64,000 nucleotides of DNA. Origin: Salpingoeca rosetta. Lineage: Eukaryota > Protista > Choanoflagellata. The notes under the pieces are model-generated. The model did not search any database, had not been told where the DNA came from, and worked only from the letters and a program-made list of their open reading frames with translations. Location of the stretch: contig JAWQFM010000006.1 of assembly GCA_033442325.1 (NCBI GenBank), positions 1,095,054-1,159,053 on the forward strand, read 5' to 3'. Below, piece after piece: positions 5,866 to 13,558 of this stretch; position 1 is the first letter of the stretch, and every line of letters begins with the position of its first letter. The translations under genes and the position numbers were made by a program.

Positions 5866-8800
5866 ATGGCTTCAAAACAGCAGTGGTGAGTCTTGTGTTG
5901 AACATGACACAGGTTGGCCTGAACGCTCTTGGGTGTCCTTCTGTCCTTCTGTCCTTCTGTCCCTTTCCCTTGTCTATTCTCCATGGCTACCGATGGTTGG
6001 TGTTTGTGGCCGTTGAGATTTTGGTTTGGTGGCTCTGTTCATCTGTTGTTGGGTGTCTTGTCCACTGCCGTGTTGGCTCCAGCATACCTCACCTCATGTG
6101 GCTCGTGGACTTGCAGTGACTATGTCTTCAAATTCGTCCTTGTTGGTAGAGATGCTGGCAAAACAAGTTTGATTAGTCAGCTGACAGAGAGTCAATTCGA
6201 CGTAAGTTGTTTGCATATCCTTGATATGCGTGATCACGTCGTCATTGTTCATTCAGCATTGTCATGCGCTCCCTTATTCTGTGCGCATTGCATCTTCACA
6301 CTGTTGCTCATACGTGATGCCGCCATATTTCAACCATTTCATTGCAGGCTCCCATTTCCAGCACCCTTGGCGTTAGCTTTGTATGTCTAATCCATGCTCA
6401 TGCATTCGGTCTGATAGTGTTGAAGCGCACGAGGTGATGCGTGGAATCAGCTTCTTCCGCTACATGCTCACACTGGAACATCCATCAATTCTTCAGAGAA
6501 CCCATGAACTCGAACTTCACGGGAAGCGCACACAGCTACAAATTGTACGTCCGTTGTGGTCATGTATTTCAATCCGCTCTGTCACGGCCTGTCCTCCGCT
6601 TCTTGACCAGAGCATGGGGTCATCAGGCAGCCACACGAACACTTTCACGCACTCGCATTCAACGAAGCACCCCTCATAGCTTCACCCTTGCCTCTTGGGC
6701 CCTTGCATGACGCTTGACAGTGGGACACAAATGGGCAAGAACGCTTCCGTTCCCTTTCGCATGCATACTGTCGAGGAGCACATGGCATCCTCCTTGTATA
6801 TGACGTCACTCGGCGGGTGAGACGGCCCGAGTCTTCACTCGCGGTTGCATGCGTCTGTTGTTGAAGGTGCTTGGGGTTTGATGGTCGACTGGGAGTTACC
6901 AAAGCTTAGTCTGCAGTTTGTGTGATTGAATGCTCCAACAGGACACAGTCAACACCATTCTGGAGTGGATGAAGGACGTAAGGTCCTATTCGGATCCCAA
7001 GTGCTGCGTGGCCCTGATTGGAAACAAGTGCGATCTCGGAGACCATCGACAAGTGTCGTTTGAAGACGGCCAGAGGTTCGCGATGGAGAAGGGCCTCGTG
7101 TTTTTCGAAACAAGCGCGAAGACAGGCGAAAATGTGGAAAAGGCATTTCAGGAGCTCACAGCCCAGGTGGTGCATCGGCTCGAAACAGAAGATCCACCAG
7201 GTGGGGCGCTGCACGACGCTTGCCGCCAAGGAAAATTCGACATGGCATCCTCATTGCTGAAGTGTGGCCAGGACGCCAACAAGCTTAACGACACAGTGGG
7301 TTGCACAACGCATGTCTCTGCCAGCTTAGGTGTGCTTTCCTCGAGCTTTGTGAAGCCACATATTACATTCTTGTGGACGCTAACCACCATCGACCTCATT
7401 CACTCATGACTCCCTGCAATCAATCATCCAGGGGAGTCTTCCTCTGCATATGGCGAGCGGAAGCGGCGCGTCTGATGTTGTGCAGCTGTTGCTCAAGCAC
7501 AGCGCCGATATCAATGCAAAGGACAAGAAGGTATTGGCCACCCTGTTCTTCTTGGATGCGCGCGCGTGTGCGTCTGCGCAAGTTCAGGTCTTTGCACTCG
7601 GGCAAGTTGTAGAAGTTTCTCTGTGTCTGTGTTCCTCCATGTTGACACGCGTCTGATGATTATTTCATCTGCTTGGAACCCCATCACTCGCGTTGGATAT
7701 AACCACCCCGTCACCTCTTCACGTGCCCCTACTCCCCCGCCACCAGGGATGGACGGCCCTCCACTACGCCGCGTCCAACAATCATGCGAACGCTGTGCGC
7801 GTGCTCCTGGAACATGGCGCTGACACCACCATCAAGCACCGCTTTGTGAGTGAAGCATACAGCTGGTCGTTGCGACCCCACGCGCTCTTGTTGTGTTAGT
7901 TGCTTGATGTGCGTGTTGAACTGGATCGCTGTCACCCAACCTCTTTTTTGTGTCAAATCTGCCTTCCTGTTCATGCCCCTCCCATCATCTGCTTTCGCCG
8001 CACACGCACACGCACACACACACACACACACACACACACACACACACACACACACACATACACACATACACACACACACACACATTCCATGCGTGATTGA
8101 CAACAACAGCTGTTCGGCAAGACGGCTCTTGACCTCGCTGTCAGCGGTGGGCACAGTGATGTCATTAAGCTGCTTCGCAACCCGCAGGTGTGTGTGTGCT
8201 ATGCTTGTGATGTATTGTTGTGTTGCTGTGTCATAAGCTCTGCTTGTTCAAACTCCATCATTCCCTCCTCCTCCTCCTCCTCCTCCTCCTACCACGCACA
8301 TTCATTCTGTTGCGGACTTGCCCTGTTCACGCATATTTCACCTCACCTGCGCAGGCTGTGCAAGCACGACCACCATCTTCACCACAACCTGCATCCCTCC
8401 ATGATGCCTGCAAGCACGGTGACACTGCGCGTGTGTCTGCACTCATTGACAAAGGCAATGTGGACGTATCCGAACAGGATACGCAGGTACGTGTTTGAAT
8501 ACACGGGTGTGTGTGTGTGTGTTGTCTCCATTCCCTGGTGCAGATGAACGCAGCAGTGTATTCATCAGACTTGTTGCCTTTGCTCATGCTTGTGTGCTAT
8601 CTTGTTCACGTTGATCATGGCTGCTTGCATGTGCAGGGCGATACACCGCTGCATGTTGCCTGCAGGCACAATCATGCAGCTGTTGTGCGGCTGTTGCTGA
8701 AGAAAGGTGCCAACATCACCACAAAGAATAACAAGGTGTGGCATGTTGAACCGGACACTTTCACTGCACACCTCCGTGTATTCTTTACATCTGTTGTGCA

Positions 8801-11800: not shown

Positions 11801-13558
11801 CGCATGCGCAGCACGGCGCATCGCAGGAGCCCAAGCTGAGCCGCACCCACGCCGTCTGCTTCATGGAGTCGACCAAGCTGGAGTTGCAGCTTGTGCCGGC
11901 TGTTGGCGGCATCAAGATGAAGATCACGAGTGCACAGCCACGCGCCATGCTGCACATGCTGCACACCATGATCAGCGAGGCCGCCAGAGAGCGCTATCCT
12001 GAGCTGAAGAGCAGCCTGCTGCTGCCGTACGACGACAAGACGCTGCTGTTCTTCGAGGATGTGCTGCACCGACACAAGAACAAGCAGGACATGTGGGTGG
12101 ATGAACAGCTGCTGCCACCCGATGACCTGATCACCAAGTACGGCCCTCTTCTGCCCGTTCTCGGCCTGCAGGACAAGTACGACGTCTTCATCAGCTACAG
12201 GTGAGACGGTGTGCGTGTGTGTGTGTGCGTGCGTGTGCGTGTATGTGCATGTGTGTCTGTGTGTGTGCATGTGTGTGCGTGTCTGTGTGCGTGTCTATCT
12301 ATTTGTCTGTCTGTCTGTCGGTCACTTCCAACCACTACTGCTGCAGCACAACATTTCACCTCACTTCCCCCCTGCTTCCCCCTCCACCTACACACACCAC
12401 CACAGACAACGCGCCAGCAGCGGGCTGGTGATGGCGCTGCATCCGCGCTTGGAGCAGCGCAACCTGATCGCATTCCTGGACGCCAACAACCTGGAGACGG
12501 GCCTCAACTTCAAGCTGTCGTTCATGACGGCGATAGGGCTGAGCCTGGTGGCCTGCCCCATCGTCTCTGCTGCCACCATCATGCAGATGAGGCAGCTGCA
12601 GCACAGCGACTACTGCGACAACGTGCTGCTGGAGTGGATGACGATGCTGGCGCTACGCGAGCACCAGCGCGCGCATGAAGATGATGAGGAGCAACATGCC
12701 AAGATCCGCCTCCAACGCATTGTGCCCGTGATTGTGAGCAGCGCGTGGCACAACTTCAACGACAGCAGCAGCATGAGCAGGGCCGAGATGAGCGAGTACG
12801 ACTCTTTCGACCGCCTGAAGCGGTTGGCCATGACGCTGCCGGATGCTGTGTGTGAGAAGACAGCAGCAGCGCTGGACCAGTACTTTTCACAGGTGCTGCA
12901 CCTGCCACCACCACAGCCGCACAAGAGCGTGCGTGAAGCGGTGCTGTCGCTATTTGACATTGACGGCATGACTGGATTTGGCGAAGAGGCGGCAGAAGGG
13001 GAGGTGGCGTGGCGAGGGAGACAGTTGCAGGGATATGCAGAGGCGATCAGGAAGGTGGTTGTTGCTGCGGGGCGGGATCATGCACGCAGCGGCGCACCGA
13101 GAAAGTCAGGCCAGGCGGAGGGAAGCGACGAAGTTGTGGAAGAAGAAGAAGAAGAAGAAGAAGAAGAAGAAGAAGAAGAAGAAGAAGAAGAAGAAGAAGA
13201 AGAAGAAGAAGAAGAAGAAGAAGAAGAAGAAGAAGAAGAAGAAGAAGAAGAAGAAGAAGAAGTACAGCATCAGCATCAGCAACAACAGCAACAACAACAG
13301 CAAATAGACGAGGAGCAGCGGCTGTGGCCATTTGCGGCAGACTTGCTATCGGAGCTGAGCTCGGCGTCGCTGCTGGAGAGTGTGGGCGGTGCGCTGTGTG
13401 ACTTTGGGGCGACCACGTGCGGTGATGTTGTGCTTGGCATTGAGGAAGGCATCATTTCGCGGAAGTCCCTCGAGGCGTGCGGTGTCCGGCCAATCCCGGC
13501 GGTGAAACTGCTCAGGCTCTTCAAGGCCAAGACATCTTGCTCCTCCTCCTTCGCATAG
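5866..13558 (+). CDS. Multidomain Roco protein: Rab-like GTPase - ankyrin repeats - Roc GTPase - COR - TIR - polyE - SAM-like
   Basis: Exons splice in frame with GT-AG. Rab: [43 protein letters not shown]. About 7 ANK repeats ([34 protein letters not shown]). Roc: [28 protein letters not shown]: [13 protein letters not shown]...[13 protein letters not shown]: YDVFISYR...AFLD...DNVLLEW. Stop TAG at 13556-13558. Confidence 0.88.
13139..13261 (+). repeat. Perfect (GAA)41 repeat encoding poly-Glu between TIR and SAM-like domains
   Basis: Uninterrupted gaa run in frame within the last Roco exon. Confidence 0.9.

Follow-up and report, generated by a model that had tools for sequence, protein, structure and literature searches.

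A gene that appears to join a Rab-family GTPase, ankyrin repeats, a second GTPase of the Roc type and a TIR domain in one polypeptide raises the question whether such a protein is real and, if so, what it might do. The gene lies at positions 5866-13558 of a 64,000-nucleotide stretch of the choanoflagellate Salpingoeca rosetta, namely positions 1095054-1159053 of contig JAWQFM010000006.1 (C6 below) in the 55.4-Mb, 68-contig assembly GCA_033442325.1; we call this whole stretch the window and number all positions from its first letter. An earlier interpretation of the letters alone (the sequence-only reading) had described the locus as a kinase-less Roco protein with a Rab at its N-terminus and a TIR output, and as a candidate innate-immune receptor. 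We find that the Rab-ankyrin-Roc-COR-TIR-SAM architecture is real, although it is not new to databases, and that the gene is intact. With modest confidence, we regard it as a single, weakly expressed, kinase-less Roco gene from an NLR/STAND-like receptor family, in which a Rab has replaced the leucine-rich repeat (LRR) sensor.

Gene model and domain order

The gene model was constructed by reading the three forward frames over positions 5850-13700 and joining the open stretches by hand at consensus splice sites. The resulting gene has 16 exons on the plus strand, starts with the ATG at 5866, stops at 13556-13558, and contains a coding sequence of 4,893 nucleotides (1,630 amino acids) with no internal stop. 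All 15 introns are of the GT..AG type, mostly GTGAGT, GTAAGT or GTATGT at the start and CAG at the end; the exon at 8110-8187 was identified via the frame reading. The single continuous frame of the sequence-only reading is thereby confirmed, and the gene is real and intact in S. rosetta. Domain searches were run on the translation of each exon or by way of spliced paralogs, and not on the whole spliced protein. The encoded order is a Rab-family GTPase, seven ankyrin repeats, Roc, COR-A/B, TIR, a poly-Glu/Gln linker and SAM, with the following features.

5866-5885, 6117-6201, 6348-6380, 6497-6544, 6721-6816, 6942-7295, 7432-7530, 7747-7845, plus strand: exons 1-8 of the hand-built model
8110-8187, 8355-8486, 8637-8735, 8951-9154, 9333-9572, 9787-10364, 10626-12200, 12406-13558, plus strand: exons 9-16 of the hand-built model
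5866..6816, plus strand: exons 1-5, N-terminal half of the Rab (G1, switch I and G3 motifs)
6942..7295, plus strand: exon 6, in which one stop-free open frame encodes the second half of the Rab together with ankyrin repeat 1
7432..9154, plus strand: exons 7-12, ankyrin repeats 2-7 and acidic linker (Pfam Ank/Ank_2 down to 2.3e-10)
9155..9332, plus strand: intron 12 (phase 0, GTATGT..ACACAG), separating the exon with ankyrin and linker from the first exon of Roc
9333..10860, plus strand: exons 13, 14 and start of 15, Roc GTPase (motifs; weak Pfam Roc)
11011..12030, plus strand: COR, with COR-A at ~11011-11451 and COR-B at ~11743-12030 (Pfam)
12172..12835, plus strand: TIR, split by the intron 12201-12405 (paralog Pfam, fold match, paralog assay)
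12836-13075, plus strand: helical extension after the TIR, family-conserved in alignment and part of the TIR construct assayed in a preprint
13133-13303, plus strand: poly-Glu/poly-Gln linker (GAG/GAA and CAG repeat)
13334-13540, plus strand: SAM domain, followed by a short tail and the stop (paralog Pfam, VIA-align)

The Rab domain occupies residues 1-180. G1 to G5 are all present, including the switch I Thr: G1 is GRDAGKTS (6145-6168), switch I is STLGVSF (6360-6380), G3 is WDTNGQE (6721-6741), and exon 6 contributes G4 NKCD (7023-7034) and G5 ETSAK (7107-7121). In addition, the segments LGVSF, QLQIW, RFRSLS, YCRGA and LVYDVT are what we take to be RabF1-5. The best PDB matches were all Rabs, with Rab14, Rab2 and Rab4 as the closest solved structures. 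Since these canonical motifs are kept, the domain probably cycles nucleotide. As had been read from the letters, the G4/G5 region runs directly into the first ankyrin repeat within exon 6942-7295, and Pfam found both Ras (5.8e-20, residues 3-80) and Ank (residues 93-120) in the translation of this one open reading frame. The last Rab helix and ankyrin repeat 1 are only ~10 residues apart, and this exon has neither a stop at the end of the Rab nor the prenylated-Cys hypervariable tail (CC/CXC) of Rab GTPases, again as noted earlier. Because the last Rab helix passes into the repeat, we regard the unit as a Rab-derived domain and not as a free, membrane-anchored Rab. The seven ankyrin repeats, repeat 1 included, form blocks of four and three, and the acidic linker after them ends with LQQEK at 9154.

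The second GTPase carries G1 GQGRAGKTT (9432-9458), G3 DLGGQ (10312-10326) and a G4-like GTFAD (10768-10782), together with an acidic insert of 160 amino acids (9787-10269). Pfam Roc scored weakly on the split exon pieces of the window gene (1.1e-3 and 0.054), and reached 1e-18 to 3.7e-17 at the equivalent position of spliced paralogs. COR-A, which shares its exon with the end of Roc, matched at 1e-17 (64.8 bits, cut-off 35.3). COR-B gave an E-value of 0.028 and 14.7 bits, below its cut-off of 27, but is conserved across the family and reached 4.7e-4 in paralog P0003. With a Roc that has its P-loop, DxxG and G4, and with a COR directly after it, the window protein is a Roco protein. Pfam found no Pkinase domain and no NACHT or NB-ARC AAA+-type NTPase in any exon translation of the gene or in its sister protein P0169 from contig C11, the only NTPases being Ras-superfamily GTPases. 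The protein may work like an NLR, yet it is no member of the NLR/STAND family. The anatomy claimed earlier, two GTPases and a C-terminal TIR and SAM without a kinase, is thus borne out by Pfam, folds and paralogs.

COR leads into the TIR within exon 10626-12200, as the sequence-only reading had stated, and this exon ends with the TIR beta-A strand KYDVFISY; the remainder of the TIR follows the intron. In the spliced sister P0169, Pfam TIR_2 scored 32.3 bits (cut-off 28), and other paralogs gave 25.8-27.7 bits. An AlphaFold model of exon 16, built from 17 family sequences, was compared by Foldseek, and its top 30 matches were all TIRs of plant NLRs (RPS4, RUN1, L6, Roq1, RPP1), most of them at probability 0.94-1.0 and with a best E-value of 8.4e-4, so that the expectation that the C-terminal domain models as a TIR held. 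E1323 (codon GAG, 12632-12634), within the motif CDNVLLEW, is the candidate catalytic Glu; it aligns with residue 1118 of the S. rosetta protein F2UB80, and at least 90% of the 17 family TIRs in the alignment have this Glu. F2UB80 has 1,352 amino acids, and its TIR (residues 1034-1255, catalytic residue 1118) was expressed and found active, with cyclic ADP-ribose (cADPR) as the product measured in E. coli lysates and with the column for depletion of nicotinamide adenine dinucleotide (NAD+) left blank (Table S4; bioRxiv 10.64898/2026.04.20.719644). Over 230 columns, the window TIR and the assayed stretch share 59% identity as well as the motif CDNVLLEW. By its length and the start of the assayed sequence F2UB80 corresponds to paralog P0160; the 23-residue motif at this start is found in four further paralogs as well. 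The TIR identity thus rests on paralog Pfam matches, the fold match and the preprint assay of a 59%-identical paralog, from which NAD+ cyclase or cleavage activity is also predicted for the window TIR.

The TIR extension is separated from the SAM by a coding microsatellite of ~43 Glu followed by a poly-Gln run. This repeat stretch is missing from the C11 sister, and its length is likely variable. The last 75 residues of the protein align with the tails of 18 paralogs, and Pfam SAM_2 was found in 12 of these 19 sequences (best 4.6e-6), the window copy being without a match. The SAM model had a predicted local distance difference test (pLDDT) value of 84.6. In VIA-align its top rows were nearly all SAM domains (Z 7.9-6.0, root-mean-square deviation 1.8-2.9 over 61-67 residues), SARM1 SAMs being among them at Z 6.5-6.8; Foldseek against the PDB gave no significant E-value for this small model. 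A predicted SAM homotrimer scored 0.45 against 0.09 for the best control, with at least 93% of contacts agreeing between runs and a partner pLDDT of at least 80; the predicted contact is head-to-tail, between helix 5 (residues 63-69) and the mid-loop surface (34-51; numbering of the 85-residue tail). In calibration, the score mark was reached by 21 of 30 solved same-chain pairs and by 0 of 23 solved single chains. This pass may, however, stem from model memory of solved SAM polymers.

Transcripts and the ankyrin-Roc junction

Transcription was followed with stranded RNA reads from two runs, mapped on positions 5800-11799. The contig runs X1 and X17 were rejected as RNA evidence, because their reads cover introns and hence represent DNA. 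Joints on the plus strand were seen for seven introns (1, 8, 9, 10, 11, 13 and 14), intron 1 (5886-6116) being joined in 3 stranded reads. The gene is weakly expressed, with the unique 5' exons very low (<1x). For the path from the Rab exons to the TIR exon that the sequence-only reading had proposed to check, the reads therefore confirm these seven introns, and the joint from ankyrin to Roc is not listed. That reading had also placed a phase-0 intron at this junction. The phase stands, and the intron runs from 9155 to 9332 and not from 9154.

Since the ankyrin-to-Roc joint is unlisted despite a nominal depth of 7-12 on both sides, we wondered whether the locus could consist of two adjacent genes, a Rab-ankyrin protein that ends after 9154 and a Roc-COR-TIR-SAM protein that starts from an internal Met in exon 13. 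Read-through past 9154 would give VCV and a stop, an in-frame Met is indeed present in exon 13, and an annotated paralog variant, P0152 (1,172 amino acids), begins near the last ankyrin repeat. The reads themselves speak against such a division. The depth in bin 9200-9399 equals the amount expected from its 67 exonic bases alone, which means that intron 12 is not covered, and the listing shows no pile-up of molecule ends at 9154 or of starts at 9333. A single row of the read-joint listing had been removed at repeats, and intron 12 opens with a TG-rich repeat. Moreover, 178 bp would be too short for a 3' untranslated region plus a promoter.

The paralogs point in the same direction. Intron 12 is 94% identical to the homologous intron of P0169, which is annotated as one gene, matches the window model exactly around the ankyrin-Roc junction and is colinear across it. 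Several annotated LRR-ankyrin paralogs likewise align over this junction without a break, ankyrin-Roc contiguity being the family norm, and at an expressed locus on contig C5 a Rab is spliced in frame to the first Roc exon. Altogether, we consider two genes very unlikely and hold with high confidence that the window locus is a single gene; that it is most probably one gene rests partly on indirect evidence.

A recombining family with three Rab-bearing loci

The window gene belongs to a large family. In the S. rosetta genome, the Roc-COR exon is present in at least 35 near-full-length copies (47-94% identity) and the TIR exon in about 40. A search with the Roc-COR region of protein P0001 retrieved 28 annotated S. 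rosetta proteins, most of which combine LRR_6, Ank, Roc, COR and TIR. LRR_6 is listed in 18 of the 28, upstream of the ankyrin repeats, and SAM_2 in one. In another member, P0002 (PTSG_02681), a C-terminal PNP_UDP nucleoside phosphorylase domain replaces TIR and SAM. The paralog survey suggested by the sequence-only reading thus did reveal variable N-termini on a shared Roc-COR-TIR core, with LRRs in most members and a Rab adjoining the core in only three loci of the genome: the window gene (C6) and the following two.

C11:184000-193999: C11 sister, P0169, deposited as "GTPase [Salpingoeca rosetta]", 1,557 amino acids, one protein
C5:798500-808499, minus strand: five canonical Rab exons and Roc-COR-TIR, no ankyrin repeats

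P0169 gave Pfam matches to Ras, Ank, Roc, COR-A/B and TIR_2. Its exons are colinear with those of the window gene and its protein is 75% identical to the window protein over residues 4-1468, rising to 95% over residues 279-960; for COR-B, TIR and tail the figure is 55-58%. The N-terminal half of the Rab (switch I, interswitch and switch II), encoded by exons 1-5 that are unique to the window copy, is only 43% identical between the two. The C11 Rab has lost DxxGQ (DTGANA) and several Rab-family motifs, so that the window Rab is, as judged from these motifs, the more canonical of the two. The C5 Rab, ~37-53% identical to that of the window, has G1 GDTQVGKS, TIGVDF and WDSGGQE, and a G4 altered to MKSD. 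A basic linker of 45 residues joins it in frame to Roc-COR-TIR, and spliced RNA from this locus appears as loose ends in the read data. The C5 locus matches none of the 28 retrieved proteins.

Identity between the window gene and the C11 locus is distributed unevenly. Over 7846-11200, exons and introns alike are 91-100% identical (96-100% over 9333-10332, and 91-99% for the introns of the tract), whereas introns outside the tract are 46-62% identical. Downstream of it, the closest paralog switches every few hundred bases among C10, C4, C2 and C14. These patterns indicate that 7846-11200 is a gene-conversion tract, that the window gene is a patchwork of paralog segments, and that the family exchanges segments by gene conversion. 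A mosaic of segments common to at least five other loci, with unique 5' exons expressed below 1x, might then be taken for a recent non-functional chimera, a by-product of ectopic recombination among paralogs that is open by chance and decaying. However, all 16 of 16 exons are intact, the splice sites are all consensus and every Rab GTPase motif is kept. Furthermore, the layout persists in two more loci with far more diverged Rabs (43% and ~37-53%), which argues for retention by selection, and we consider such a chimera highly improbable.

Public protein sets were searched for the product of the window locus. None of the 28 proteins came from it. With the Rab-ankyrin region of P0169 as the query, ankyrin proteins swamped the matches and the product was not seen, and a search with the Rab region alone returned only P0169 and three unrelated long proteins. 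It is thus probable that the locus has no annotation, or that the older assembly did not include it. For P0001 and P0151-P0173, the UniRef name "non-specific serine/threonine protein kinase" is a mislabel, because Pfam finds no kinase domain; the name seems to have been transferred automatically from Roco proteins of the LRRK type. Among other choanoflagellates, LRR-Roc-COR-TIR and Roc-COR-TIR-SAM proteins are found in Salpingoeca infusionum and Barroeca monosierra and Roc-COR relatives in Hartaetosiga and Mylnosiga; no Rab was found in the relatives sampled. An ENA metagenome protein, P0294, has a Rab-like domain, many ankyrin repeats and an MMR_HSR1/dynamin-like GTPase, a layout analogous to Rab-ankyrin-second GTPase, with COR absent.

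The sequence-only reading knew of no described protein with this architecture. This was too strong, since the C11 sister, although uncharacterised, has long been deposited as one protein of 1,557 amino acids. The Roc-COR-TIR family has also entered the literature, through the 2026 preprint that assayed a paralog TIR and that shows LRR, Roc and COR among the architectures in the legend to its Figure 3 (bioRxiv 10.64898/2026.04.20.719644). In brown algae, LRR-ROCO proteins were proposed in 2024 as immune receptors with exon shuffling as a diversifier, and a TPR-ROCO-TIR protein (TPR, tetratricopeptide repeat) of the red alga Chondrus was mentioned (PMC11378527). A 2018 choanoflagellate transcriptome paper noted that ankyrin repeats co-occur with TIR, and reported no animal-type NLR-CARD/Death proteins. 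We found no Rab-Roco fusion described in the literature. Two things are new: C6, C11 and C5 are recognised as a small Rab-bearing subgroup within a recombining, receptor-like family, and the window contributes a better-preserved, apparently unannotated Rab-Roco copy.

The limits of the window gene agree with those given by the sequence-only reading. An upstream LRR exon and downstream family exons were looked for, and no family-related exon was found in 1-6200 or 13500-20000. Together with an open reading frame on the opposite strand upstream, this bounds the gene. Other features of the window are listed below. The GH31-type, tubulin-tyrosine-ligase and ABC-2 frames are unrelated to the Roco family, and the first run of N lies 1.3 kb downstream of the Rab-Roco gene, between TG/CA microsatellites.

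1123-3474, minus strand: open reading frame with a GH31-type glycosidase N-terminal domain, upstream of the Rab-Roco gene
14842-15085 and 29238-29612: runs of N, either assembly gaps or withheld letters
17371-19893, minus strand: open reading frame with a tubulin-tyrosine-ligase family domain
36101-40645, minus strand: WD40 beta-propeller open reading frame of 1,514 amino acids, with WDR3-like and TEP1-like propeller matches up to residue 641
42755-44602, plus strand: open reading frame with an ABC-2-type transporter membrane domain

Possible roles of the Rab and comparison with known systems

Since most annotated family members start with LRRs and the Rab of the window protein sits at this position, the Rab is most simply read as a recognition or targeting module. 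The layout of the family would then comprise a variable N-terminal recognition module, a Roc-COR nucleotide switch and oligomeriser in the place of NACHT/NB-ARC, and an enzymatic TIR effector. For the window protein, we infer a mechanism in which the Rab could serve as bait for Rab-binding or Rab-modifying microbial factors or, alternatively, could attach the protein in a GTP-dependent manner to a membrane compartment, for instance the food vacuole. The Roc-COR switch would be released by a change at the Rab or the ankyrin repeats, the released protein would self-associate, aided by head-to-tail SAM contacts, and the TIRs, once clustered, would form active sites and convert NAD+ to cADPR as a signal. 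The earlier designation as a candidate innate-immune receptor fits this family context of a large, recombining Roc-COR-TIR family.

Several points weigh against the reading as a Rab-sensing receptor gene. At the level of the gene, introns 2-7 have no listed read joint, at a depth below 1, and the joint 9154|9333 is absent from the listing; in exons 12-13, identity of ~95-99% with the C11 copy prevents the assignment of reads to a single locus. The locus has no annotated protein of its own among public proteins. Pfam gives no TIR or SAM for the window copy (exon 16 alone, with low-complexity noise only), and the exon 16 model lacks beta-A, which lies in the other exon, and is poorly modelled over its first 34 residues. 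As to function, the role of the Rab is purely one that we infer, the immune function of the family is putative, and no challenge, knockout or expression-response data were found.

It is possible, though we hold this only tentatively, that the Rab acts as an integrated decoy for factors from bacteria or viruses that bind host Rabs or modify them covalently, the response passing through Roc-COR assembly and TIR-made cADPR. If this is true, the three Rab paralogs with their very different switch regions would be three baits. The sequence-only reading had instead started from LRRK2, which Rabs bind and activate via its N-terminal repeats. In that case the fused Rab would be a cis equivalent of Rab29 or Rab32 on the repeats of LRRK2, its GTP state being read by the ankyrins and setting Roc-COR and TIR clustering. 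The preserved G1-G5 and Rab-family motifs of the window Rab and the short spacing to ankyrin repeat 1 are consistent with such an arrangement, as is a borderline match of the ankyrin block to the LRRK2 ANK model (17.2 bits, and 27.1 in P0169; cut-off 27.5). On the other hand, the Rab sites of LRRK2 are in its armadillo and not its ankyrin repeats, and the C5 paralog links its Rab to Roc with ankyrin repeats absent. In C11, moreover, the Rab has decayed while the remainder of the protein has been kept, which argues that a conserved regulatory GTP switch is not required. We therefore regard a cis activator as unlikely; an integrated sensor, bait or targeting domain fits the position of the Rab at least as well as an LRRK2-like input.

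A role outside defense was also considered, in which the protein is an endomembrane Roco scaffold, cADPR an ordinary calcium-mobilising messenger, for example in feeding or phagosome maturation, and the Rab a mark of compartment identity. Endosomes and phagosomes are where Rabs of the Rab2/4/14 type act, cADPR is well known as a second messenger, Table S4 has no entry on NAD+ depletion for the F2UB80 TIR, and expression is constitutive and low in ordinary cultures. Such a role would, however, leave unexplained why the family numbers at least 35 paralogs, has modules swapped at both the N- and the C-terminus and frequently undergoes gene conversion, a pattern typical of conflict genes, and a Rab without a prenyl tail cannot anchor itself in a membrane. 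We thus judge a housekeeping function to be improbable.

The animal NLR-caspase and MyD88 pathways are absent from choanoflagellates (PMC6040629), which makes intracellular danger sensing in these organisms a question on which this family bears. With at least 35 Roc-COR-TIR genes that recombine and whose N-termini can be swapped, the family looks like an independent invention of the NLR principle on an LRRK2-related GTPase switch, and the Rab-bearing members place a second GTPase at the sensor position, in an organism that is editable by CRISPR. Two testable ideas follow: that the Rab-Roco connection of LRRK2 is ancient and able to become intramolecular, and that integrated baits exist outside plants. 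The cADPR measured for the paralog TIR provides a read-out for such tests. The gene is thereby relevant to Roco/LRRK2 biology and to the evolution of immunity, its immune role and the function of its Rab being putative.

Among known systems, F2UB80/P0160 and the choanoflagellate LRR-(ankyrin)-Roc-COR-TIR(-SAM) family share with the window protein the core, the ankyrin block and CDNVLLEW. These proteins have RNI-type LRRs (LRR_6) at the N-terminus, whereas the window protein has a Rab there and hence two GTPases per chain. P0169 has the same domain order, including the SAM-like tail, but lacks the poly-Glu linker and has a decayed Rab. LRRK2 and LRRK1 resemble the window protein in having ankyrin repeats upstream of Roc-COR and a functional link to Rab GTPases; the Thr in place of Asn in the G4 motif GTFAD also has its counterpart in THLD of LRRK2. 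In contrast to LRRK2 and LRRK1, the window protein has neither kinase nor WD40, its output is TIR plus SAM, and its Rab is built into the chain and not supplied as a partner or substrate in another molecule. SARM1 also pairs TIR and SAM, but there SAM precedes TIR, whereas it follows TIR in the window protein. The brown-algal LRR-ROCO and Chondrus TPR-ROCO-TIR proteins share Roc-COR with N-terminal repeats and form exon-shuffled families, but they belong to another lineage, no Rab has been reported in them, and their TIR activity is putative (PMC11378527). Plant TIR-NLRs, finally, offer the closest TIR fold and the same combination of a sensor, an NTPase switch and a TIR enzyme in a large, variable, recombining family. 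They differ in using a STAND ATPase (NB-ARC/NACHT) in the order TIR-switch-sensor, where the window protein has a Roc-COR GTPase in the order sensor-switch-TIR, and effector recognition by the latter would be proposed by analogy. Plant NLRs with integrated decoys, which carry a host-target-like domain at the sensor end (e.g. PMC9528084), recall the position of the Rab in the window protein.

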